A stretch of DNA of 64,000 nt, from the NCBI RefSeq assembly GCF_036588685.1, contig NC_086376.1, forward strand, positions 86,159,630 to 86,223,629, given 5' to 3'. This DNA comes from Mytilus trossulus. Lineage: Eukaryota. A program made the translations under genes and the position numbers. Below the pieces are notes generated by a model. That model saw only the letters and a program-made list of their open reading frames with translations. It had not been told where the DNA came from and searched no databases. Below, piece by piece: positions 3,361-52,500 of the stretch (the first letter of the stretch is position 1; every line of letters begins with the position of its first letter).

Positions 3361-4944
3361 TTCTTTCGCGCCAAAATATTTGGCAGAGTTAAAGTTCTTG
3401 ATTACTGTGATATGTAACCAAATTATAGCGCCACCTGGAGGATAGAACTTCTTTGTGTCGCGGATCACTACAATTCCGGCCAACAATTCAAGAAGAATTT
3501 CTCCGTAGTGCAGTACAAAGACGATTACAACGAATAAATTAATAAATCATGTTCTTTAAGACTTTAAAAGTATCGATCACTACACGTTCTTCTGATTTAG
3601 TGAAATTACGTCATAAACAGGATGAGAAATGCATGACCGTGTTTAATACTAAAATAGTACACACAGAAATCAAGAAACTCTCCAATTGAAAGTTGTTAAT
3701 GAAAATAACACTTTATTAATGTTATATGATCGAGACTCTTTTCTGGATAGGTCTTCTGGATCCTCAGACATAATCATTTTATAATTATAAGGATATATAA
3801 AATACGCAAAAACGCTAGGAGCTTTATGACAAAAAAGACCAAAAAAGAATAACCAAAACTCGTCTTCGATCAATTTTGCCTAAGGGAGATGGAAGTTTAG
3901 GTTTTTCATAATTTTTAAATTAGTTGTTGCTTTCAGCAATAAATCATATGAGAACATCGGAAAAAAAAATTCTTCGACAAATTGTTAATTAAATGTTTCT
4001 TGTTAAGAACGTCTAAGGAAACGGAAAAGCCAGTGCCACAACGAATGCGTCAAATATATCGTCTTGCTGTTTTCTATAAAAGAGAGCTAACTAAATATTG
4101 ATCTGAAATACTTTTAACTTGATACGACTCTGACTTAATGATTGAAATTGAAAAGTAAAAAAAAAATAACACATGTCATCTATAATACTTCTAAAGGAAG
4201 AGACCGATTTAATTGAACCGTTTCTCTTCTGAAACTACACAAAGTCGGAAATATGTGTGATGTTACGTATAAATGTTGTGTTAATTTGTCCTTTAATCAA
4301 CCTTTTGTCTACAGAAAAGACCAATTTTGGAGAGAAAAAAACAACCCAATTCGGAGACCGTTATCGCGCATGCTCATTCGATGTAATGATGCGAAATGTA
4401 AAAACTCTTTGTTTCAACTGTTCAACACTTGCCCAATTGTACTGCGATTTGTCGGGCATCTTTTATGACTTAAAAAACCAACACCATTCAAATAAAATGT
4501 AACACGTATTATTTTCTTTCTATCGAAGAAAATGTTAAATTGTATGTCTTTTCTGAAAGTTTGCATTTAACATTAAATTAGCAAAACTGTCATAAACCCA
4601 AAGGGAAACCAAAACGGAAAGTCTTTTATCAAATGTCAAATTCAAAGGCTCAAACACATCAAACGAATGGAAAACAACTGTCATATTCCTAACTTGAAAC
4701 AGGCATATTTTTTTTTAAAGAAAATGGTGGATGAAACATTTGTATGTTTTGCTAGAATTGACTTCACAATCCGAAACGAATCACATTTTCCTGTCTTAAA
4801 AAAAACCTGGATCCATATTCAATTTAGATAAAAATTTGATGAAAATAGGTGCATATAAGTGTTTTTCCTGCTCAGTTTTCTGACAAGTACTTTTAAACTT
4901 AAATGTAATCAACAGATTCATCATATTTTCTTTTAAAACAAACA

Positions 4945-5782: not shown

Positions 5783-7755
5783 TTTTTACAGATTGTTCGA
5801 AAACTATAAAATGTTTTAAATCCTAACTTTTGATAGGAGACGATACAGACTTATTATATATATAACGTAATTAATATTTTTTTGCTTTTTATTCTGTTTA
5901 TTAGTTCAAATCTTCAGGCACTACAAAAAAATTGTAGGACAAGTATAACTTATTTTAAATTTTCGAAGTATAGAGACTGTTTACACGGCCAAAAATGAAG
6001 GCAGATATTTTACCAAAAAATTGAATAATTACAATTTTCTAAGTCCAAGAACCATACTTCCGCTAAAAGTCCGTTAATGCTGCACGGAACACCAACATCA
6101 TTATACACCAATGTACCAAAACATCAGAACAATAAATGAAGGTGAAAAAAGTTCAAGACAACTGTTTGATTTCAAAATAACAGACATGTGTAACATTTAA
6201 TTTATATGTAAAGGATTGACATGCATAAAATCACTTATTTTAAAGTAAGTTACGATATCCAGTCGAAGTATTTATTTATCGTAGGACATGTAGAAAAATC
6301 AGTCCGTTCAAAACAAATCTTAATTTAAGTAATTTTATGCATATCAGCCCTTATCTTAGTGGCTAGTTATGAAAAAGGGAAAGTTAAATAAAATAGAGTA
6401 TTCCCTCAATTGGACGTCTTAGCAGTAGAAAGTCGCTAAGAAATGTAAAGGAAGTTTTGGAACATCGGATCCCTCGTTAGATTTGAAATGGTTCTGTTAC
6501 GTATTCAGCATTTTAATTTCATAACATACAGGAATACATGTACGTGACTGATTGCACATATGAACAGGATACACCTACAGCAAACTGTAAAAAACTTAAT
6601 TTGTGATGCTTCAAAGCTAAATAAATGCATTCTTTCAAATGATAATTTACTACAACATGAATATTTTGTTTTTGGTATTAAAAGATCAACAGATGAAACT
6701 ATTGCACATTGTTTCCAATTTGACGTTATGTTTGACGACATGCAAATTTACGGCAGCTTGTTTAACTATCTGATACAAGTATTGTAAAAAAAGTAATAAG
6801 AGAATGTATAATTGCATTATATAGGCGAAAACGCTATCAATGTATCAGGTGTACTTTTAGAAACCTTGTAATGTAATTAAAACTGTTCCAATTATAACAA
6901 ACTGATTTATGTAGCACGATATGTTTCCTAATTCACCTTCAGATCAACTTAGATCAGCCATAAAGGTAAAGCATGAAATGATAGATATGTGTTAGTTAAA
7001 ATTTTCCTGTATATCCATCACAGTGCGCGTCACTTCCGTTAATTACAGAATTACTTAATACATTTTTACTCCTACACGTATAATTGAAGAACCTCCTTCT
7101 GAAAATTACATTTCAATAAATTTATATTATACAGACTTATATTTGCGGACGGACAAATTAGTTCTAAACGAGTTCAGAAGGTACAATTTTAACCCCATGC
7201 ATGTCTTGGTTAAAGATGCTGGGGACGTCTTTTGGAAATAACAACATACTTTAACTGAGATGTAGACACAGTAGATATTTGGCGGCCCAAATACTATGTT
7301 TAAAAATTTAAACCGTATGCACGTTTTAAATCGGTACCGATTTAATCTTAAATTATTATATTTCATTAGAGTTATTTGAAAATCGGACGGGTAAAAAGAA
7401 TGCATTAGTCTAATATTTCCATATTGTAAAATGTAGACTGCAATTTACTGTAATTTTATAAAATAACTCCAATCATTTCAAAATATTCACGGAGGGATCT
7501 GCAGACAGAGGAGTAAACACAATGAGAAATGTAAACGGTTGGTAACTAAAAGCTTGATAAAATTTCCATAGAGCATAATCCACCGTATGAAATCGAATCC
7601 AAACTTTAGTTACGAATTGCACTGAAAAAAACCCAGTTGCATCGAGTTGGATGTTGAAAGTTAGAATAATTTGTGGGAAATGCTTATCATATAGCATTTT
7701 TAATTTTGCTTTGAATATTGTTCTTACCAATAACATATAGATATACAATAGAAAT

Positions 7756-8077
7756 GTATAGGGGGAGGGTTGAGATCTCACAAACATGTTTAACCCCGCC
7801 GCATTTTTGCGCCTGTCCCAAGTCAGGAGCCTCTGGCCTTTGTTAGTCTTGTATTATTTAAATTTTAGTTTCTTGTGTACAATTTGGAAATTAGTATGGC
7901 GTTCATTATCACTGAACTAGTATATATTTGTTTAGGGGCCAGCTGAAGGACGCCTCCGGGTGCGGGAATTTCTCGCTACATTGAAGACCTGTTGGTGACC
8001 TTCTGCTGTTGTGTTTTTTTATTTTGGTCGGGTTGTTGTCTCTTTGACACATTCCCCATTTCCATTCTCAATTTTAT
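7756..8077 (+). mobile_element. Young 3' fragment of the Penelope-like element with twister core (P5 5' strand truncated)
   Basis: Homologous to 20567-20885. Contains GGGGGAGGG...TAACCCCGCC...GCCTGTCCCAAGTCAGG and ends in ccccatttccattctcaatttta. Confidence 0.85.
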
Positions 8078-9143
8078 TTTTTGTGTTTAGTTTTGAGACA
8101 ATGTCATTAATTTGATTTAAACGACGTCATGATCTTTTTAAAGAATAATTCTATTTCAATTTTAGAATCAGTCATGTTTATAGATCATAATGCTACACAT
8201 TATTATAAAAAATATCATTAAAAAAAATATATTTGGGAATGTTATTCGTCCCAAAGGAAACAAAAGGCTTATACAATGTTCGATATTATGCCCTGGAAAG
8301 TACACCCTTTAGATTAAAGGTATATTTATTACAGAAGTATGTTGAGAAACCCAAAGTACACGTAAATTCTTAAAATGAATATTATCCATTTCTATTATTT
8401 AAGCACCTAATAATATTGATGCACCCTCATAAGAGATAGCTAATCTTACTTGATATAGCCAGTTATTTTCTCATGTAACAATAATCCCTTTGAAATCAGT
8501 ATAAAATAATTGCAGTAAAGGTATCACAACTCTCTTTGGCTAGACTGTATATGAGATGTGTAAATACTAATTACAGAATAATATATCAAATATCATCACA
8601 ATTTCTGTAAAGAAGACGGAAAACGGAACAATAACGTGACCAAAGCATTATATTTATGTTAGTCAAAGTGTTTGGTACCCCCTTAAGAAATAAGTCTCAT
8701 AAATGTTGTATTACAATTTCGATTATTTATTTATGTCTAAAGAGTCTTAATCATGTTAACATCGGATGATCGTAAATTCTGGTGGATGATCAAAGGCACT
8801 AGTCTCGGAAAAAATCATGTCTCTATACTTATAAGCTCGGTTAAGGTACATTTTATAAGATTATTATATTGTAGTGATGTAACCATGTGTTATCAGTACA
8901 ATATGGTTTGTTGTTATATATATAGTAGATTATTTTTTGTTTAACAGTTATTTATTTTTATATTTGGATTTGTAATTAATATCTATGTATATATTTCTCA
9001 CGATAAAACATTTTCATATCCTTTAACACATGGCATGAGTAAAATCTCTTTGTTCTTACTGTGGTATAATCTGAATAATGCACAGCTAAGGTGTGCATTA
9101 ACTACCTCAGATATACTGCACAGTTCAAATCTATTTTTACCTT

Positions 9144-18127: not shown

Positions 18128-18415
18128 AATATAGATATAAGCAGATGTGATATGAGTGCCAATGAGACAATTCTCTCATACAAGTAACAATTTGTAAACA
18201 GTAAACCATTATAGGTAAAATTACGGTCTTCAAAAACGGAGCATTTGCTCACACCAAACAGCAAGCGAAAATGACATGTATAAAACACTTATAAACTAAA
18301 TCAACAAACGACAACTACTGAACACCATATTTCTGACTTGAGACACGTGCAAAAAAAATTATGCAGCGGGTTTAAACCTTTTAATAGGTAACAACCTTTA
18401 CCCTTATCTTGAACT
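18128..18415 (-). repeat. Non-autonomous repeat family C with degenerate twister-like head
   Basis: GGGU AAAGG ... UAA ACCC GCU ... GCACGUGUCUCAAGUCAGAA. The 3' part (gacctataatggtttac...ttgtctcattggcactcataccacatc) is shared with 4945-5206, 5428-5568, 12455-12602 and a fragment at 25170-25215. Confidence 0.7.
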
Positions 18416-18888
18416 TTAGTGCAGCATTACAACGTAAAAAAGGGTAATTGATGTGTTATTAATTTTAAAAAAAAAGCTGTTTTGCATTGGAAATCTTACG
18501 TCCGACAGAAACAGGTTGGTCTTTTCGATGTTTGAATGGCGTCTGTTTGGCTGTACTGACGCTACTTCTGTTCGGCAAGATTGTATAACTACATTCATGA
18601 CAACATTTTATCACGCGTGAGAATTTTGATTAACATAACGAATGGTCCTTTTAAACCCACTTAATCTCTATCTTATATAAGTCACCCTATGACTGTATTA
18701 ATACAATCAAATTATCGATCTCTAACCTTTATAAATACAGTGTATTGGAATACAATCCTATGATATAAACATGTGTTGGTCATTGTGAACTACCATGATA
18801 ATAATATAATTCATAGATTGAAGGATGTAACAATTTTGTAGTTGGAAATTAAAAACATGGCTAATCTAACAGATAGGGTACGTAACGT

Positions 18889-19020: not shown

Positions 19021-20799
19021 TTGTAAAATATACTATTTGAACTGTTTACACACAAATGTACTTATATTTTTTGTCAGTCCTTATCTCCCTGCTTTGTAAT
19101 TGTATATCATCGTTACTTTGTATACACTGTATTTGAACGTAACTTTAAAACCAAACATGAAGACGGGAAAATATCATGTTTGACACTAAAACATTGAAGA
19201 ACAAATTTCCTAATGGATCTTTTGCAAAAAAAAAATAAAAATAAATAAATAACTGTTTAATGTCAATTTAGTGGGACAAGTCTATGCTGTTTCTTCTTCA
19301 AAACTTCCAACTTCAATTTCTTTATATTGCTTGTGAGTATGTTAACCTACACCGAATCAAGACATGGATGTCCCTTTTCCAATATCTATAGTACCTTGTC
19401 GATTTATATCAAGAATCTCTTCTTTATATGTATCATTTCATTTTTTAATCATTATATACTGCAAGTTTCCTTTCAGCCTGAAACTTTCAGGTTTGTGGGT
19501 TCTAATCAATCTTATGTGTGATTCTAATGGTTTTATTAAAAAGCAGAAATTTTGAAAAATGAGTTTTAGTTTGCATCAACATATACCTACATACAAAGAA
19601 GAGTATATAATTTAAGAATGCAAAATTTAATGTCTGAATACAAAATACTAACTAAAACGTTTTTCCCTATTCATTTATCAGGCACTCAGCTCGGTTAAAA
19701 TTGCATTTTGAAAATTTGAAGTACGGTTCAAATGAAGTTGAACTTTATGTAATTTGAAATTATTGACGTAAATCTTGACTTTGGTTTATTACTTTAAGCG
19801 ATATAAAAAACAAGAACAGGTTTTGAAACTCGTTTTGATTTATATTAAATAACAGTTGGAATTATATATATAAATCAAACACATGTTTTAGACAGATAAA
19901 ATTGTTTTCATTGTTACAAATATCTTTAAATCAGTTCGTGGAAACTAAGTCTTGACAGACTTAACATGCTTTTTATTGATTTTCAGTAGCTGTTATGACC
20001 TATGGAATACCGTTTAGTATTCTCCGTAGCTTCAGAGCATAGGGATCAATTGATCTGAAGCAACGGTTCATTCGGAGGTTTTTATTGTTTGCGTTAATAA
20101 TATTTTTCTCTTGTCGATTGCCGGAAATTGTTTCCAATTTATCTTGTTAAATATGTTTTAGAGTGTTTGTAAAAACTAAATGTTTTCCCAGATGATTTCA
20201 TTGATAGATAAATCTAAAGAATACTTTCAAGAAGAAAATTTTGTTTTTCCGTCGATGTTGAAAAGTAAACAATTATTTTAAATTCTTAATGTAAAATACC
20301 GAAAACTTTACACGAACCACCATGAGACATTAACGAAACCAGTGACAGAAATTTAGATGCAAACATATGGCGGGAGTTACCAGAGGGATAACCAAGACTA
20401 ATGTGTCGAAGAGCAACCGACAACTTAATTACAAGAAACGTAAAGATAAAATAACGGACTACGAAACACAACACACACAAAACAAGACTGACCAACACGA
20501 CTATTTCTTCAACATATATGTATTTGAAATTTGTACAATATGGCAATGTTAAGTCTGCAACATTTGTAAAATTGAGAAAGGAAATGGTGAATATGTCAAA
20601 GCGACAACCACCCGACCATAGAGCAAACAACAGCCGAAGGCAACCAATGGGTCTTCAATGCAGCGAGAATTCCCGCACCCGTAGGTGTCCTTCAGCTGGC
20701 CCCTAAATTATGCATAATAGTACAGTGATAATGGACGTCATACTAAACTACGAATTATACACAAGAAACTAAAATTTAAAATCATACAAGACTAACAAA

Positions 20800-20890
20800 G
20801 GCCAGAGGCTCCTGACTTGGGACAGGCGCAAAATTGCGGCGGGGTTAAACATGTTTATGAGATCTCAACCCTCCCCCTATACCTCTAGCC
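20800..20890 (-). ncRNA. Type-P5 (circularly permuted) twister ribozyme, intact core
   Basis: Minus strand reads GGCUAGAGG(P5) UAUA GGGG(P2) GAGGG uugagaucucauaaacauguu U^AA CCCC(P2) GCC GCAAUUUUGC(P3) G CCUG(P4) UCCCAAGU CAGG(P4) AG CCUCUGGCC(P5). This matches the twister core UAA-P2-GCC...GCCGGUCCCAAGCCCGG...GAGGG. Predicted cleavage is between 20847 and 20846. Confidence 0.8.
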
Positions 20891-21207
20891 AATGTAGAAA
20901 AGTAAAAGAATAACAATACGCACATTAAAATTCAGTTCAAGAGAAGTCCGAGTCCGATGTCAAAAGATGTAACAAAAGAAAATAAATAAAATGACAATAA
21001 TACATAAATAACAACAGACTACTAGCAGTTAACTGAAATGCCAGCTCCAGACCTCAATTAAACTGATTGAAAGATTATGTCTTCATCATATGAAAATCAG
21101 GTACAATCCCTCCCGTTAGGGGTTTAGTATCATACTATCATAAAATATATGAGAAGAACATAACCCGTGTCATGCCAACTACTGGTTTTTTTTAGAAATA
21201 AATGTGT

Positions 21208-22080
21208 TTAGTTCCGATGCAAAGACCCTATCAGTGAATCAATGTTAAAGCCAAAATATGCAATCTTTAATGACCTGACAACAATATCGTAACTATATCC
21301 CCTTTTAATAAGTCTATTTAAAGGTTTTGTTAGTTTCTGAGGAGAATACTGACATTTTTGTGCTTTATAAAAAATATTTCCATAAAATTTTGGATGTGAA
21401 ATACCTGAACGTATAAGATGTCTGCATGTTGAGTTATATTTACGAATTATTTCCTTATACCGGTGATAAAATTTAGTAAATGTTTTGACCAGTTTGTGAT
21501 ATCGAAAACCCTGGTGTAATAAATTTTCAGTAATACATAAATTTCTCTCGCTAAAATCTAATACGTTGTTACATACACGAGCGAATCGTACAAGTTGAGA
21601 TATATAAACACCATAAGATGATGACAAGGGAAAGTCACCATCTAAAAATGGATAATTAACAATAGGAAATGAAAAATCATCTCTTTTTCATAAATTTTTG
21701 TATTAAGCTGCAGTGGTCATTGTTATCATTAGCTTTATTTAAAGTAAGTTCTACAGGATAAATTTCTGTAGTATACAAACTGGAGTCGTCATTATTGAGA
21801 GCCAATATATCATCCAAATATATAAAAGTATTGTTAAATTTTTGTATCAAATGTTGTTTTGAAGGGTCTTTGCTAATTTTAGTCATAAATTGTAACTCAT
21901 AACAATACAAAAACAGGTCCGCAATAAGTGGTGCACAGTTAGTCCCCAATGGAATTCCAATAACCTGACGATATACGGAATCTCCAAAGCGAACAAAAAT
22001 GTTATCAAGTAAAAATTCAAGCGCATAAATAGTATCAAAGCATGTCCAATTGACATAGTTCTTTTGTGTTTGAATCCTAA
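21208..22080 (-). pseudogene. Penelope-type reverse transcriptase pseudogene
   Basis: ORFs 21677-22096 and 21208-21627 are consecutive RT parts separated by a small deletion and frameshifts near 21680-21710. Confidence 0.88.
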
Positions 22081-23187
22081 AAAAATCAACATTCAATATT
22101 ATCTAAATAAAAAAAGGGACTTGTTTCAATGATGTAATCAAGTTTACACTCTTAGACGATAGGAAATGAGATCATGTAATATGGTATTGACATAACCTTG
22201 AATTGGATGCATGTTAATTATCAGTAATCTAACCATTGATTGCAGTTCTATAGTTTCAGCTTTCTAAGCTCTTAGTTTTATGTAATAAGTTAATTTTCGA
22301 TATTTAATATGTGCATGGTATTGTTCTGTGATTATATTATTCACATAGACATGTAGTCATAAAATTAATAATGTCTTGGGATTACACAAGAGTTTTTAGA
22401 CACAATTATTGATGTGCCATGGTATCGGGTTGTATTGGCGGCTTTTAACATTATCAACGCAAAAGTGACGTAGTTTGTTACACTTTTTATTTTGCTGTTC
22501 ATGTTGTTGAATACTTACTTTCTCATTTAGTGTAAGTTGTTTACATGAAATTTTAACAAAAGAACAAATTTGTTTAATCATTATCCATTTACAGCTCACA
22601 GTGAAATATGTTGACGCGTTTTAATATCTAATAACTAACCGTTTTTAGTGTTTTTTTTACATAAAAGATCAAACGAGCTAGTTTAATAAATAACATTGTT
22701 CTTTTGACATATATATGTGATATCCGTAAAGAAAATTATATTCAAAGCAATACGATTGATTTTCAAGATGATATTGCCATTATTTATGAATCATTAGAAT
22801 CATTTTATCATTAAACATCTCATATTATCATTCTCTACTAGAGAGTTCGATCGACAATAAACAGAGCATAAAGCTAATTTTACAATGATTTTTATAGAAA
22901 TCTTTTCATTTGTGACAGTTCAATATTTCATTTTAGTTTCTTCTATATCTAAATAATTTTCATGATTTGCTTTCCCCATCTCTTAATAGTTCTTTTATCC
23001 GACTTTGTTTTTACAAAGGGAAGATATTGTGATTTGTCTTAAATCACACATATATATCATAGATTATCATTCCCCACCCCACCAGAATATCATCTGGTCA
23101 TATAATGGTAAATGTCGAATTCTGGTGAATAACAGTTACTATTACCTTCACGCAAATTGCTTGAATTGATTGACAAAAGCCCCTTAA

Positions 23188-26807: not shown

Positions 26808-27393
26808 TGCTCATTTTCGCCATATCTTTCCATGTTTTCTTCAGTTTATGTTCAGGCCTTTATGTTTTTGAAGTGTTCTGATATTTCTATATGAAGATAA
26901 CTTCAAATGCAAATTATTCTTAGCTTGAAAACGTGTTTGTTTTGAGAAAAATCATCTGACAAGTGTGATTAAAGGGTGTTTGAAATTTCCTGATTTTTTT
27001 GTCAACGGGGGACACATATTCGCCGTTTTTGCATATCTATTTTAAACCAAATAACTGCAGCTTTAAACAATATTTATCAAATAAATTTCATTATAGATGA
27101 ATAGCAGACATTTGAAAGGTGTAAAAAAGTAAAATTTTGGGCAATCATTCAAAAAAATAAATATGAAATACTTCTTTGAATTTTTTTTTCATTCAGAAAA
27201 TTGGCAGAAAATCGTTGTCCTTTTTTCGGTCCTTTGCGGTTAGTGCCGAAATTTTGTCTCATTTTCAAAAATAACCATATTTGTTATAAAAATATAATTT
27301 ACCGGCATATTTCTTCCATTTCAACCATCCTTTGGAGTTTTTACACCTCAAAATCATAAAACGGCGAAATTGTGTCCACGGCGAATATGAGCA
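26808..27393. mobile_element. MITE-like element with its right end overlapped by the Penelope fragment
   Basis: TGCTCATTTTCGCC ... GGCGAATATGAGCA inverted termini, plus an internal inverted pair ggacacatattcgccgtttt / aaaacggcgaaattgtgtcc. Confidence 0.55.
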
Positions 27394-27700
27394 TTTTTGC
27401 GCCTGTCCCAAGTCAGGAGCCTCTGGCCTTTGTTAGTCTTGTATTATTTTAATTTTAGTTTCTTGTGTACAATTTGGAAATTAGTATGGCGTTCATTATC
27501 ACTGAACTAGTATATATTTGTTTAGGGGCCAGCTGAAGGACGCCTCCGGGTGCGGGAATTTCTCGCTACATTGAAGACCTGTTGGTGACCTTCTGCTGTT
27601 GTGTTTTTTTGTTGTTTTTTTGTTGTTTTTTTTTGTTTTTTTTTTATTTTGGTCGGGTTGTTGTCTCTTTGACACATTCCCCATTTCCATTCTCAATTTT
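27391..27700 (+). mobile_element. Young 3' fragment of the Penelope-like element
   Basis: Matches 7801-8075 except for one substitution and a ~35 nt T-rich expansion. Confidence 0.88.
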
Positions 27701-33816: not shown

Positions 33817-36135
33817 TTAAATAAACCATCTAAACCTCCCGCTTATATGACAATGTTTTAAAATATTGCTAAAAAGAAAACAAGACGTTAAAGAAATACA
33901 GCACAAACACACACTAGAACACTCATCACAGAGAAATGCACAAACATGTAAGATATTAGTTGACACAACATGCAAACACATTACAACAACAACATCTTCC
34001 ATCAACTACAGACATGTTCTCCCATGTACATTTGGTTTCTATACTTATCGAGATTAACAGTGGAATGAAAACGAGTTAAATAAAATATGCTTACTTAATG
34101 TACATGTGTCTTTCCCATTACAGGAAGCTCGATGTGGGTTGCCATTCTTTCTCCAATTAACCATACATAATCTGCAGTGTACATTGAAGTCTGTGTTTAA
34201 ACGTTTTACCAAATATAACTAAATGAAAGACTGCTTTTGAAGCTGTGATGAATATCATCTAGTCAGTTACCTCAAACGCATGGTAAATCTATTTTATCAA
34301 AATATATTAACAACTAAATAAACTCATCATAAACGCCTGGACTCAAATACGCGCATTTGTTGTACAGAAGACTTATCATGGACTCTCTAATAAAAACAGT
34401 TCAAACGCAAAATAAAGTACAAAAGTGAAGAGCTTCGAGGATCTGAATGATTTTACAAGATAATGCAAACTTTTTCTAGGGGTGAAAATCAAGTACAAGG
34501 TAGAAGAATGATATGGTATCCAGACAAATTGAAATTGTTCTATTGAGTACAATTTTTGCGACTGTCATTATGAATATAGCACACTTTCTATGTGTAAAAA
34601 TATTAGTATTCAAATACAATTTCGTTCAAATGCTAATAATGGGTTTTAGGCTTTGGTCAGATACAATCAATTTAAACTAGGACATTAGTAGAAATGACAA
34701 TTAAATCAAATACATAACACTTTATAAGATCGAAGCTTAAGTATGCGACGTTTCATCATTTATTCAATACTGGTATCTTATCACTCGTGCTGTTTTCATG
34801 TTCGCTTAATCATACTAACTCATATTACAAAATACAAGATCAAAACTTGTTTCATTAAACTGAGCATTTGATAGAGAGAAAGATAATTATATGATAGCAT
34901 GGACATTCGACAAAACAGCACCCCTCTGTGATTATGATTTTTATACATATTGTATGTCAAAACTAATTCAAAACGGAATATTTCAAATTTTCTTGTGATT
35001 AAATTATTCTGATAGACATTAACAGTATTCGAATTTCACTCAGTGTCATCATTGATTAAGAACAAATTCTACATAACACATATAGGAGTTCTACCTATAA
35101 TTTATACACCCACTATGGAATTGTCTAGTGATGGATTGGCACTTTCATTTATTTGATAAATTAAACTGCAGACCGATGAGATTTCTGGAATAACACAACT
35201 AGAATGAATTGATTAAAATTGAAATTCGTCCTAACCAGATGTATGTAGGCATGTTACATCAAACAGATACAATACGTTCACAGTACAAAACGCCAATCAT
35301 ACTTATTTAAATTTTATGCTGGAAAATATAGGAAAAATTATATTATCTGTCATAAAAGTGGGAGGTTTTAATTAGCTATAAAAGCAGGTTTAACACACCA
35401 TGTTTTGTTAAACGCAAGCAACACGCCTGTACCATAACAGGGATATAGTAGTTGTTTTCTTTTCAGTTTGATGCTTGATTTAGTATAAAGTTTGATTTTA
35501 TAAGTTTTTATGGGTTTTGCTCTTTTTGAAACTACTTTGGAGCTCAGTATTTGTTTTTTATTTAGATATATACTTACCCTTTCCCGACTAAAAGAAGAAT
35601 CACAAGACGACCAGTTACTGGTTTTATAACTTAAGTCTCTGATATCAGTATATGAAAATTGTATAATTGGTCAGAAGCTTACACTCTGTTTGTTTTTAAA
35701 TAAAAAGGAAATGTGTGGAGACTTTGTAAACAGTTATGGTAAGATGCGAATGACAAACTTCATTTTCTGATATTATTTGCTTTTTAATTATCATGAGTAT
35801 GCCAGGTTATTCCTATACTTTCAGGAAACTAATACCGCTATTTTAAAACTATATTCTTGAAAAGTGAGAGCAAAACAGGTAGCATATTATTACTTTTCTC
35901 AAAAACTTTCCATTGCCCTTAATGCAATTTATAAGGTCAATATATTAACAATCATTTCAATCAAAAATACTCTAGTCCTTTAATAAAAAAATTTCAATAG
36001 TCTCTCATTCCTGCATAAAATCTATTTCGACTTAAATTTGAACGATGAACTTGTGATGTTGACGACAAATTTCACTTGTGTTTTTTTCATTTTGATTTTT
36101 TAATCCGACTGGTCAAGTTATTACTTGTTATTATA

Positions 36136-36352: not shown

Positions 36353-36608
36353 TAGTTATCAAAGGTACCAGGATTATAATTTAGTATGCCAGACGCGCGT
36401 TTCGTCTACATAAGACTCATCAGTGTCACTTAAATCAAAATATTTTTAAAGCCAAACAAATACAAAGTTGAAGAGCATTGATAAGTTGTGTCTAATATGG
36501 CTAACGTAATATATGCCTGGGATAAGAAAATCCTTAGTTTTTCGAAAAATCCCAGTTTTTATAAACAGGAAATGTTTTAAAATGACCACAGTATAGATAT
36601 TCATGTCA
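36353..36608 (-). mobile_element. Hammerhead-bearing dispersed repeat (retrozyme or pLTR-like monomer)
   Basis: About 250 nt shared with 2661-2909 (+), 5660-5782 (+), 31908-32036 (-), 34318-34445 (-), 40398-40556 (-) and 58168-58396 (-). Confidence 0.8.
36386..36429 (-). ncRNA. Minimal type-I hammerhead ribozyme, intact catalytic core
   Basis: Minus strand reads GUGACA CUGAUGA GUCU uaugu AGAC GAAA CGCGCG UC^ UGGCAU. Both conserved boxes, a 4-bp stem II, a palindromic minimal stem III and a GUC cleavage triplet are present. Stem I has one mismatch. Confidence 0.85.
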
Positions 36609-37094: not shown

Positions 37095-37360
37095 AGATTA
37101 AAATAACAGAAATACTGATCTCCGAGGAAAATTCAAGACGGAAAGTCTCTAACTAAATGGCAAAATCAAAAGCTGTAACTCATCAAACGAATGGATAACA
37201 CATGTCATATTCCTGACTTGATACAGGGATTTTCTAATGTAGAAAATGGTGGATTAAACCTGGATTTATAGCAGCTAAACCTCTCACTTGTATGACAGTT
37301 GCATCAAATTCCATAATATTGACAACGCTGCTTGAACATAACAAACAGACATAATAGGTA
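37095..37360 (-). repeat. Non-autonomous repeat family B carrying a twister-P5 variant (core 37203-37297)
   Basis: UGUCAUA(P5) CAA GUGA GAGGU ... UAA UCC ACC hairpin(P3) CCUG UAUCAAGU CAGG AA UAUGACA(P5). Other copies or fragments at about 2250-2365, 4600-4740, 11205-11345, 13990-14080, 33060-33300, 35347-35560, 38860-39070, 51395-51665 and 57395-57455. Confidence 0.75.
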
Positions 37361-39349: not shown

Positions 39350-39720
39350 CAATTGAGAATGGAAATGAAAACCCGACCATAGAAAAGACCACAGCAGAAT
39401 ATCAGCAACAGAGTTTAAATGCAGCGAGAAACTCCCAACCCTGAATGCGTCCATCAGCTGACCCTTAAACAAATATCTATACCTGTTCACCAGTAACAAA
39501 AATACACAAGAAACTAAAATTAAAAATTAAAAATTATACAAGACTTACAAAGGCTAGAGGCTGCTGACTTGGGGCAAGTGCAAAAATGCGGCGGGGTTAA
39601 ATATGTTTTTTGAAATATCAACCCTCCCCTTATACATCTAGCCAATGTAGAAAGTAAACGCATAACAATACGCGTAGTAAAATTCAGTTCCTGATAAGTC
39701 CGAGTCCGATGTCAGAAGAG
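39350..39720 (-). mobile_element. Older 3' fragment of the Penelope-like element with degenerate twister (39552-39643)
   Basis: Colinear with 20570-20965. P2, P3 and P5 are largely retained; P4 is mutated. Confidence 0.8.
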
Positions 39721-40397
39721 AAATCATCTATTTTATCATATTTTTTTGTATTAATCTTTCCGTTTATGATATAGATATCAAGATCGAGGAAAGGGCAGTG
39801 GTCATTGTTTGTATAACGTTATTTTTAAAGTATGTTCAACAGGATAACTTTCTTTAGTATAGATACTGAAGTCGTCATCCAAATATCTAAAAAAAAAAAC
39901 GTTTACTTTAAATCTTTTAAGGACGCGTGGAAAAGCAGATAGTCGTGTGCGTAATGTTTGAAAAAAATAGTTGTTTGCAAATCTGAATGTTTAATCAGAA
40001 AAACTGAATATATATAATGTAATGGTCCAGATTTTACAAAATGTGTTTGTAGTGCTTAAACCAGATTTAACGACAAATGAAATGTTAGCAAAACAACCAG
40101 ACAGATGTGAAACAGATCCTGTCTTCAAAACATTATATGAACTACAAACATTATAATTGTCGATTTATTTCGAGCTTGGAATTTAAAATGATTTTAAAGA
40201 ATTTATTCTAACTATTTAGACTTGCATATATAAAAGCTGTAATTACTATAGACATACTGCTTTGTTGTAAAATAACTTCAGTGGCTCAGTTTTAAAGTAT
40301 ACATTTCGTGATATAGAATGCTTTCTGGCATTTTTTACAAGATTTCTAATTAGTGATTACATATTTTAGTGCCTGACAAAAATAGTCAATATATATT

Positions 40398-49500: not shown

Positions 49501-52500
49501 ATCAGGCTGACCTACTTGATCTTCAATAAAATCATTGGTCAAATTATAACCAATACAATTATCTATTATAGCTAAAATTTATAGATAATTTAAATACTCA
49601 TCTTTCAAAATTTCACTGAGGCCAGGTTTGGTGGGTGATTTACTACTGTTCACATACGGACTGCTGGACATGTAGTGTGTTTAGGACACACAAGAGTAGT
49701 ATATTCCCATTTTCTGTTCTCTTCACCTGGTACTCCATCAACTGATTAGCACACTGTAACTTATCCAAGTCCTCCAAATTTCTCTCTACCACCAATAATT
49801 GCCGACTCAGTACCTCTACTTTGTTGATTTAAAGCAGTTAAAACAGTTCTCAATGAAATATCGGGTTCACCTTCATAATCCAAGACTAAATTCGAACGTA
49901 CTAATCGACTAACACAGCTAGAAAAATTAACGTGACCTATCGAGTAGACCCTGTCGTGCCGAATGATTTAACCGCCAAATCACACAAACCACTTAACCTA
50001 AACGCCACCTATATGGGCAGACAATTCAGAAGAAAATAATTTCATTCTAATTCATAAAATCAACCGACTGAAATTATATAAATATTTCATTGATTAGACA
50101 CCAACATCAAATGCCATTCAGAAAGCAGTGATAAATTTCGCTTTCAATTTGACAGACAGAATCAAGATCGAACTAGTTTACCATGACATATTGCGCTATA
50201 ACACTTTTGACAGAAAGGGATTGTTGTCCGTTAAAATGGTTGATGGTGTATAATAAATAGTTCTGATAAACTGTCGGTACTTTATTACGTTCATTGATGG
50301 TTGAGGAAGTATCTTCATTAAAATGATATATGAATGGTACGTAATATAGTAACAGCATGAGGAATTGTCGATATAATGATTTATAAACAGTTTGTTATTT
50401 GTTTTGTTTTTTATTACAACTAGGTTGAGTTTCTAATCATAATGGCATTTATTGAAGGCAAAATAAGTTAAACTATGTGATAACCTAAAAGAACTGAAAA
50501 ACCAATAACCATGTAGCATAATAAATGATGCTATACTTATTAGAGTATACTTTTTTATAAAGATGTCTTTGATAGTTATTACTTTTACTGAATATGATAT
50601 AGTCTTCTTTAATATTTTGTCTGTAAATGAAATGTTTACTTTATATAAACAAAGGATATATACGACTTCAAACTAGGATCTGTAGTACGATATTTCTCTT
50701 TAGTAACATATTTCTAGTCTCTGCTATAATCGAGGGCATATATCAATTGATTCGGTAAGAACGCGCAACACTCTATGTTTTGTGATAGTTGGTCAAAATA
50801 GCCAACTGGTATGAAAAGCGACCGAATGTGTTCTTTATCCTACTGTGGAATTTGGAGTTCTTACGACTTTGAGTTTTATACACGGCACATTCTGAAGCGG
50901 TTGTCATACTGAATATATGGATGGAGAAGTCTATCCTTTAGTTAATCTGTGTGTTCGTTCGATCGCCCTTTCGTCCGTTCGTAACAGCTTGACTTGATTT
51001 GTTGGGGAACTTATAGAATCTTATAAGCATCAGTTTATTTATTTATTATTTGTCATTGCATTATCTGGGGTAATTTTTCAATATCGGTGAACCTTTCACA
51101 GAATTTATATTCATTTCACCATTCTGATGATTTTTCGGGCTCATTTTGGCATGATATAGACTTAGTCATTGCAACACACATGTATACCCGCTTCTAATCA
51201 TGTTCATCCCCGACTCCTGGAGTGTTTGTAGGAAATTTGTGTCGTGAATCATTGTTATAATAAATCATACCCTTTTCGTTACATTCATAGTTAAGGATGT
51301 TTGCATACTACATCACTTTTTCTCGTTTCTTTTATATGACAAAAGATGATTCCTTTTATCCGAACTGTGATGTGTTTTTATTATTTGAGATAATAATACA
51401 ATGTTGACTGCAGTCCCCTGTTATTTTACATTTTTATCTATTGTGTCTGTTCTATTTTTTCACACATCGTTGTCATTAAAATGGAATTTGCTGTGACTGT
51501 CATACAAGTAAGATGTTTAGGTAGCTCCGAGGTTCAATCCATCAGCAATGCCTGTACCAAGTCATGAATATGACAATTGTTATCCATTGATTTGATGTGT
51601 TTGAGCTTTTGATTTTTTGTCATTCGATTGGGGACTTTCCTGTTTTCATTTTCCTGGGAGTACAGACTATGCTCTGATAACTGAATAATTTCTATATATT
51701 TGAAATCGATAAAAAAAAAATTAAAAAAAAACAAACAAAAAAACAGTAAGACAAGCGATGCTTCTTGTTATTATCTACGGTCACTCATACCCCTCATAAA
51801 GTTAGGAGTTTGTTTACATTTGGTTGGGTTTTTTTTCAAGAATAATTGTTTTCGAAATATTTACCTGTTTTTACAAGTGATGCCATATTTACATTTTGAA
51901 TAACCACAATGCACTTAGAATTCTAAAAATTTCCTTTATGTTCTATTAGAGCATTCTGCAACTTAATAAAAACACGATAAATTTATTGAATGCGTCATTT
52001 CAATGTTGACATATCATTTAATGTTTTAACTTTTATGAAAAGTAATTCAATAAAGCATTTTTGAGGACAAACAATTTGTCATTACAATTGAATCATGAAA
52101 TATTAATGTGTTTAAAAAAATATTTAAGGTGAAAGTTTTCCAAGCTAGTGCAAAAGAGCCTCATTTGCCGAGTATACGTATTGACAAAGAAATCTGTGCA
52201 TGCATAAAAAAGGGTTTCTGATAATGAGTTATAAACAAGTTGAGAAAAACAGCTTGGACTTTTTGGGGGGCTTCTTACTTGAAATAAGTAATTGAATCGT
52301 ATTCAATTAAAATTCAATGCTCGAATTATTTTTGTGAGATAATAGAATTTTAATTTTAAAGATATATAAGTGAACTTGAACGCCGTAATATAGCTGGAAA
52401 ACTGTTTTGATTGCTAAGAAAACGGATGTGTATAAGCCTTGTCGCACATTTCTTTTGAAACATGTATTCAGAATTGCCTAGACAACAGATGCATTTGATG

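Follow-up and report, generated by a model that had tools for sequence, protein, structure and literature searches.

Metazoan Penelope-like elements (PLEs) carry hammerhead ribozymes in their pseudo-LTRs, in which helix III, next to the cleavage site, is palindromic and which apparently function as dimers (Cervera and de la Pena 2014, PMC4209133). These hammerheads were proposed to release unit-length RNAs, which perhaps circularise (PMC4209133). A hammerhead in the terminal repeats is regarded as characteristic of PLEs, and the Naiad/Chlamys clade has been singled out as lacking it; from this absence it has reportedly been argued that ribozymes of this kind are possibly dispensable parasites. 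Naiads are distinguished by an N-terminal GIY-YIG domain, a CxC linker and a DKG motif modified to DKA (Craig et al. 2021, PMC8557442); they are subject to 5' truncation, form pseudo-LTRs through partial tandems and have a main body of 3.4-4.4 kb (PMC8557442). In selenoprotein-encoding Naiads of clams, in-frame UGA occupies two Cys positions, one preceding GIY-YIG and the other eight residues past DKA, and the 3' UTR contains a SECIS (PMC8557442). In that study Naiads were searched for hammerheads only, canonical ones were absent, and the word twister never occurs (PMC8557442). Twisters are a different class of ribozyme, for which stem P1 is dispensable for cleavage (PMC5408937; PMC11662667). 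They cut 5' of a conserved A.

The window analysed here, i.e., the whole stretch of 64,000 nucleotides of Mytilus trossulus DNA, contains on its minus strand a short domain with the parts of a type-P5 twister (Table 1). The original prediction had described a permuted twister core with the U^AA cleavage site, P2, GAGGG, P4, an L4 loop able to form both pseudoknots, P3 and P5, and all of these elements were confirmed, each in its predicted place. We counted 10 pairs in P5, including two G-U pairs, instead of the predicted nine. The description of the core as complete held only in part: P1 is absent, which had gone unmentioned, and two palindromes occupy its place, so that by the canonical definition the core is incomplete. 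Overall, we consider it likely that the locus represents a twister-class self-cleaving domain that is conserved in the 3' UTR of selenoprotein-encoding Naiad PLEs and has a processing role, with cleavage, dimer dependence and processing all being inferred.

Table 1 Positions of the twister parts, the host element and further twister folds in the window
Feature	Position	Strand	Basis or remark
Twister-like domain, type P5 (open at P5), with P3 hairpin	20800-20890	minus	
P5, 10 pairs including 2 G-U	20890-20881 with 20809-20800	minus	minimum-energy fold
P2, GGGG (3' strand) with CCCC (5' strand)	20877-20874 with 20844-20841	minus	
GAGGG	20873-20869	minus	Rfam alignment
Segment of 21 bases between GAGGG and U^AA	20868-20848	minus	
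Palindrome A, UGAGAUCUCA, zero loop	20858-20867	minus	directly 3' of GAGGG-U, where the 3' strand of P1 is expected
Palindrome B, AACAUGUU	20848-20855	minus	abuts the U of the cleavage site on its 5' side, at the place expected for the P1 5' strand
U^AA	20845-20847	minus	aligned to UAA of the Rfam model
GC of loop L2, forming pseudoknot T2 with GU of L4	20840-20839 with 20815-20816	minus	
P3 hairpin	20837-20828	minus	minimum-energy fold; flanked by paired C20838 / G20827
P4, CCUG with CAGG, closing L4	20826-20823 with 20814-20811 (domain part 20811-20826)	minus	minimum-energy fold and Rfam alignment
L4 loop, UCCCAAGU	20822-20815	minus	
Element tail, 3' of the twister	20567-20799	minus	common 3' boundary of copies
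Family A copy (high-copy Naiad family), 5'-truncated: C-terminal half of RT, 3' UTR, tail	20567-22085	minus	
RT coding remnants in two frames (21680-22102; 21211-21687)	21211-22102	minus	translation; tblastn
RT stop codon TAA	21208-21210	minus	
SECIS-like hairpin in the 3' UTR, ~55 nt past the RT stop	21087-21151	minus	Rfam SECIS_1
Second twister copy, sub-family ~89% identical, 5'-truncated inside P5	7749-7839	plus	
Third twister copy, decayed, internally deleted family A derivative	39551-39644	minus	
Twister fold, other repeat family, no RT nearby	37203-37297	minus	R2, 81.7 bits
Twister fold, other repeat family, no RT nearby	35348-35450	plus	R2, 32.6 bits
Twister fold, other repeat family, no RT nearby	51498-51575	plus	R2, 32.2 bits
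Twister fold, other repeat family, no RT nearby	18320-18416	minus	R2, 22.2 bits

P5, P3 and P4 are recovered by the minimum-energy fold (z = -2.9 vs. shuffles), with a three-base joiner between the 5' strand of P5 and the GGGG of P2 and a single A between the CAGG of P4 and the 3' strand of P5. The conserved nucleotides of loops L1 and L4 (N^AA, the GAGGG strand and U-CCC-AAG-N) and the GC of L2 are all present, and the first G of GAGGG, G20873, corresponds to the conserved guanine of twister loop L1. In pseudoknot T1 the last three bases of GAGGG pair with the CCC of L4, a register that agrees with the three Watson-Crick pairs of T1 in crystal structures (PMC5408937), whereas T2 contains a G-U pair where the canonical motif has G-C. 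The model predicts the scissile bond to lie between U20847 and A20846, cleavage itself being inferred; the predicted 3' product, comprising the 3' half of the ribozyme and the tail, would measure 280 nt from A20846.

The core sequence, a full-length sub-threshold Rfam alignment and covariation that includes both pseudoknots support the twister identity of this stretch; self-cleavage remains an inference without RNA evidence. Detection depended strongly on the search used. No twister was reported by an Rfam scan of the whole window at gathering thresholds, and a scan of 701 nt (20500-21200) with E values up to 10 likewise missed it and returned only the SECIS-like hairpin. In a search of 131 nt, the Twister-P5 model (RF02684) aligned over its full length (model positions 1-58) with each conserved letter matched, at 23.4 bits (E = 0.0027) and hence below the gathering threshold of 37.6. 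A genome-wide RF02684 search yielded three sub-threshold matches, but as only 79 of 26711 candidates were scored these are not informative. By comparison, a separate covariance model (R2), built from nine relatives with RTs 40-58% identical to that of the family in the window (family A) and leaving out family A itself, scored the domain at 46.7 bits (E = 3e-9). A strict descriptor of the motif gave 58 matches (29 distinct sequences) in the ~490 kb of DNA searched and none in shuffles; a very relaxed version gave ~25 matches per shuffled set and gained nothing beyond the strict set.

In the region where P1 is expected, bases following GAGGG are not complementary to those preceding U^AA. Every family has instead a pair of covarying palindromes, perfect or nearly so, whose arms meet without a loop or around a single central base. 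The first, UGAGAUCUCA in the window, reads GGAUCC, GAGUACUC, GGCGCC, GGGGCCCC, GUGCGCAC or GGUGCACC elsewhere, and the second, which ends at the base before the cut and is AACAUGUU in the window, reads AACGUU, AACUAGUU, AACCGGUU or AACC-N-GGUU. Summed palindrome arm length amounts to 122, compared with a mean of 63 and a maximum of 82 in shuffles. The P1 region alone has no predicted structure (0 kcal/mol), whereas its homodimer has a predicted gain of 13-18 kcal/mol vs. 6-8 for shuffles; RNAcofold cannot score both palindromes paired at once, which would be a pseudoknot there, and the predicted dimers show only the first palindrome. In all intact families the central four palindrome bases are self-complementary, which a hairpin does not require but a duplex with a second copy does, suggesting pairing between two copies. 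Since the palindromes replace P1 and are unable to fold on themselves, we infer that the active form may need two paired ribozyme copies. A P1 formed in cis between the two palindromic segments was also considered and rejected, as they are not mutually complementary in any family.

The twister lies on the sense strand of its host element, 318 nt after the RT stop codon (~320 nt had been predicted) and 233 nt before the 3' end of the element. The copy in the window is 5'-truncated and carries a deletion of 37 bp at 21709/21710 that shifts the frame, the 37 bases being present in other copies; by these two lesions it is dead. Its ribozyme sequence is nevertheless the most common one of family A. 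For the 551 nt surrounding the motif, more than 3600 first-look candidates were obtained in the 1.3-Gb genome, and the best 40 are 97-100% identical. All 30 genomic copies examined end at 20567 and vary in their 5' ends, as expected for 5'-truncated retrocopies. The RT remnants are 93-97% identical to the family A RT (tblastn), and their translation contains the motifs GIPLGTNCAPL and YLDDIL and a C-terminal region of the PLE type. Pfam found no significant family for the ORF pieces, so that membership in the Naiads rests on the motifs named by Craig et al. (PMC8557442).

These motifs were found in longer copies. A GIQYVGE-type GIY-YIG motif, absent from the truncated copy in the window, lies upstream of the RT in two family A loci, L034 and L050, the latter being a metagenome contig of 4176 nt with an RT identical to that of family A. 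CNC (CxC) and ADKAAN, a DKA form of DKG, occur in L050 and L031. In L050 the reading frame contains four TGA codons (positions 194, 284, 320 and 1595) and no other in-frame stops; TGA 320 lies just before the GIY-YIG motif, and TGA 1595 is the eighth residue after DKA. The SECIS-like hairpin of the window copy is sub-threshold (SECIS_1, 31.1 bits vs. a gathering threshold of 35, E = 4e-4). Sub-threshold matches likewise separate stop codon and twister in family B, a second Naiad family of this genome, and in 7 of a further 10 loci with twisters, which gives the Naiads found here the appearance of the selenoprotein-encoding kind. The predicted assignment to a Naiad-type PLE was thus supported by GIY-YIG, CxC, DKA, the UGA positions and the partial-tandem pseudo-LTRs of longer copies of the same family.

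The tandem architecture is directly visible in several loci. A 5'-truncated copy including the twister abuts a full-length copy in L034, the ends of L050 overlap by 145 nt to give a unit of ~4031 bp, and in L057 two twisters (3-81 and 4184-4262), 4181 nt apart, flank the ORF. That L050 and L057 assemble as more than one unit would fit tandem arrays or circular templates in their source organisms, which is a possibility only. A repetition of a different kind was observed in one genomic copy, L032 (5516-8222), where an internal segment of 741 bp from the RT region is repeated head to tail, with three extra copies that each end in the same out-of-frame junction.

To follow the motif beyond family A, metagenome contigs were scanned with an RT alignment, giving 80 loci with RT identities of 34-100%, on which R2, the descriptor and a further model built from families A and B (R1) were used together. 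The fold was found in 16 of the 80 loci (L050-L054, L057, L058, L061, L067-L070, L072-L074 and L084), always on the RT strand and, in 15 of the 16, 136-680 nt past the end of the RT match; in L072 the contig ends at the RT and the twister lies upstream of the ORF. These loci represent at least a dozen families, and in all no fewer than 15 diverged Naiad lineages, with RT identities of 40-100%, have the fold at this place. R2 adds L086 and also L085, which is cut by the contig end, and gives a weak match in L125. No match was obtained in other loci with enough 3' sequence, e.g., L062 and L077 (RT 49-51% identical) and L079, L080 and L088 (43-44%), so that the motif is either not universal or beyond the reach of the models. 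Rfam gave no twister match for the distant relative L070, and more distant families are not seen by it; it is blind in particular to a large sister group of families with a 3-bp P2 containing one bulged base and a CC/GG form of T2. Family B, whose RT is 68% identical, has the homologous motif ~675 nt past the stop codon. Its 3' UTR can be aligned with that of family A only inside the twister (E = 7e-9), apart from a weak SECIS match.

The fold, its covariation and its fixed position are established by these comparisons. Pairs were counted in 16 representatives parsed by structure. The first (outer) pair of P2 is formed in 16/16, as C-G (6), A-U (6), U-A (2), G-C (1) or G-U (1), and P4 occurs as CCUG/CAGG, ACCG/CGGU and ACUG/CAGU; both stems are 100% paired in nine families, with two-sided changes. 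The length and sequence of P3 vary from family to family while its pairing is kept, its flanking pair being C-G in 12/16 and U-A in 3/16, and P5 is unrelated in sequence between families but paired in all. P5 is also variable in length, with 17 base pairs in L069 (4073-4181) and L070 (2659-2752) and 5-12 bp in other families. Since the pseudoknots are absent from both search models, their covariation provides an independent test. T1 occurs as GGG/CCC, AGG/CCU, AGA/UCU and GGU/ACC, its three positions being paired in 15/16, 16/16 and 10/16 with exchanges of G-C to A-U and G-C to U-A; T2 occurs as GC/GU, AC/GU and CC/GG, its two pairs each forming in 15/16 as G-U, A-U or C-G, with compensatory exchanges. 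The AA 3' of the cut is invariant, the base 5' of it is U or C, and the conserved loop nucleotides are kept in the 16 representatives apart from paired changes. In a sequence-only MAFFT alignment of nine families, 93.9% of paired cells were occupied by pairs, compared with 77% in shuffles and 27-50% with slid partners, and 14 pairs changed on both sides. The covariation score of 0.515, vs. 0.175, was reached by none of 500 shuffles.

Further ribozyme-like copies occur in the window (Table 1). The sub-family that is 89% identical is represented by two short 5'-truncated copies, 27391-27700 (+) and 7749-8082 (+), which run opposite to the main copy and begin within the twister, in P3 and P5, respectively, away from the predicted cleavage site. 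About 64 nt upstream of the decayed third twister, RT residues ~246-330 are found at 39708-39948 (-), the C-terminus of the RT and the SECIS having been lost. The four twister folds without a nearby RT, of which that at 37203-37297 has GGU/AUC as T1 and AC/GU as T2, could represent other Naiad families truncated at the 5' end, or else non-autonomous elements. A type I hammerhead-like motif with a palindromic helix III was observed at 36386-36429 (-), sub-threshold for Hammerhead_1 (30.2 bits vs. a gathering threshold of 34, E = 7.5e-5). It is the only one in the window and belongs to another repeat, ~800 nt from a twister repeat. From sequence alone, both ribozyme classes appear to be present in repeats of this genome.

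How such a domain might serve the element can be proposed by analogy and from its position. The twister is circularly permuted, with flanking RNA entering and leaving via P5 and with an extra P3 hairpin, in a 3' UTR ordered as stop codon, SECIS, twister and a tail of ~230 nt. Cleavage of the element RNA between U20847 and A20846 would leave a 2',3'-cyclic phosphate and a 5'-OH. Because Naiads insert as partial tandems, a truncated copy with the same ribozyme in its pseudo-LTR tail precedes the full-length copy, and a transcript from the upstream pseudo-LTR would be cut at both ribozymes to give a unit-length RNA of ~4.0 kb. The Naiad twister may in this way trim tandem or read-through transcripts at both pseudo-LTR copies, with the second ribozyme copy for pairing provided either by another RNA or by the other copy within one tandem transcript. 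That this lineage processes its RNA with a twister instead of a hammerhead, as originally suggested, remains an inference; no hammerhead match was obtained in 20500-21200 even at E values up to 10.

A bolder reading, which we offer only as a possibility, is that Naiad twisters are obligate dimers, in which each palindrome would pair with its counterpart and two side-by-side intermolecular helices would replace P1. Only RNAs carrying or meeting a second copy would then be cut, and the unit-length product, with ribozyme halves at its ends, might refold into a twister and be ligated into a circle; copying of this circle would yield the more-than-unit-length cDNAs behind the tandem insertions of PLEs. 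Genomic copies speak against efficient cutting of every RNA. Most of them exceed the 280-nt 3' product in length, which means that the downstream ribozyme had left their templates uncut at the time of copying. The 5' ends of truncated copies, at -297, -221, -36, +9 and +151 to +228 relative to the cut, show no pile-up, although only a few incidental copies are available.

Among alternatives to a self-cleaving ribozyme, the one that survives best is a twister-derived fold that no longer cleaves and has been kept as a 3' handle, e.g., for template recognition by the RT or for RNA stability. Absence of P1 and the sub-threshold Rfam score speak in its favor, the long 5'-truncated copies indicate that uncut RNA is the usual template, and the non-autonomous-looking repeats of the window share the fold, as would be expected of an RT-recognition element. 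However, nucleotides needed for catalysis only (the A 3' of the cut, the first G of GAGGG and the AA of L4) are invariant down to an RT identity of 40% while structural positions covary freely, and twister activity survives loss of P1 (PMC5408937). We therefore consider the non-cleaving fold unlikely. Less probable still, and in our view very unlikely, is that the ribozyme is a separate small parasitic module of the retrozyme or SINE type riding on Naiad 3' ends. Such an idea was raised for PLE hammerheads by Craig et al. (PMC8557442), and the four RT-less twister folds of the window could be cited in its support, but 5' truncation also produces such copies, and the position and strand of the twister are constant over RT identities of 40-100%, with its divergence tracking that of the RT, which fits vertical co-inheritance. 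Chance likeness to the twister consensus in AT-rich repeat DNA has only the lack of a gathering-level Rfam match to recommend it and is all but excluded by the absence of strict-descriptor matches in shuffles, the E value from R2 and a covariation exceeding that of 500 of 500 shuffles.

If Naiads do carry a self-cleaving twister at the place equivalent to that of the hammerheads, two unrelated ribozyme classes have been recruited to one job, which would argue that self-cleavage of RNA in terminal repeats is important for retrotransposition of this kind. The few known biological contexts of twisters would then be joined by a second retrotransposon class, many twister-like repeats in invertebrate genomes that are missed by current Rfam models would be accounted for, and a natural twister without P1 would become available, with palindromes through which control of catalysis by dimers can be tested cleanly. 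The original prediction had presented the pairing of a twister with a PLE as not known to have been described, subject to a check of the literature, and we found no report of it in the open-access literature searched, which leaves out most subscription journals. Within the limits of that negative result, what is probably new here is the occurrence of an established class of ribozyme in a host class not reported for it before, together with an unprecedented substitute for P1.

Of the systems described so far, the type-P5 twister (RF02684, clan CL00120; Roth et al. 2014; PMC5408937) is the closest in structure. It shares with the Naiad motif the U^AA loop, GAGGG, P2 and P4 of 4 bp, the UCCCAAG-N form of L4, the GC for T2, a T1 of three pairs, the permutation open at P5 and the optional P3; the Naiad twister differs in having two zero-loop palindromes instead of a P1 hairpin and a G-U pair in T2, and in scoring below the gathering threshold or being missed. 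The minimal hammerheads of PLEs are the closest in setting, as they too are small self-cleaving motifs located in the terminal repeats, flanking the ORF where partial tandems are formed, with the cleavage-adjacent helix reduced to a palindrome that suggests activity as a dimer. They belong, however, to another ribozyme class and another PLE clade, Naiads having an N-terminal endonuclease and being reported without hammerheads. Twister variants of the RTE-type element Perere-3 from Schistosoma mansoni (Liu et al. 2021, PMC8501958) also reside in a retrotransposon and have a weak or unusual P1, but they are of type P1, lie at the 5' end of a LINE and derive half of P1 from the target-site duplication. 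The Naiad twister belongs to type P5, follows a SECIS in the 3' UTR and pseudo-LTR of a PLE, and does not fulfil these Perere-3 criteria. No circular RNA has been shown for Naiads, and retrozymes and other ribozyme-bearing circular RNAs (PMC4918200, PMC7761336) differ further in being non-coding and in using hammerheads; in both systems, however, ribozymes in direct terminal repeats would free a unit-length RNA that can be ligated.
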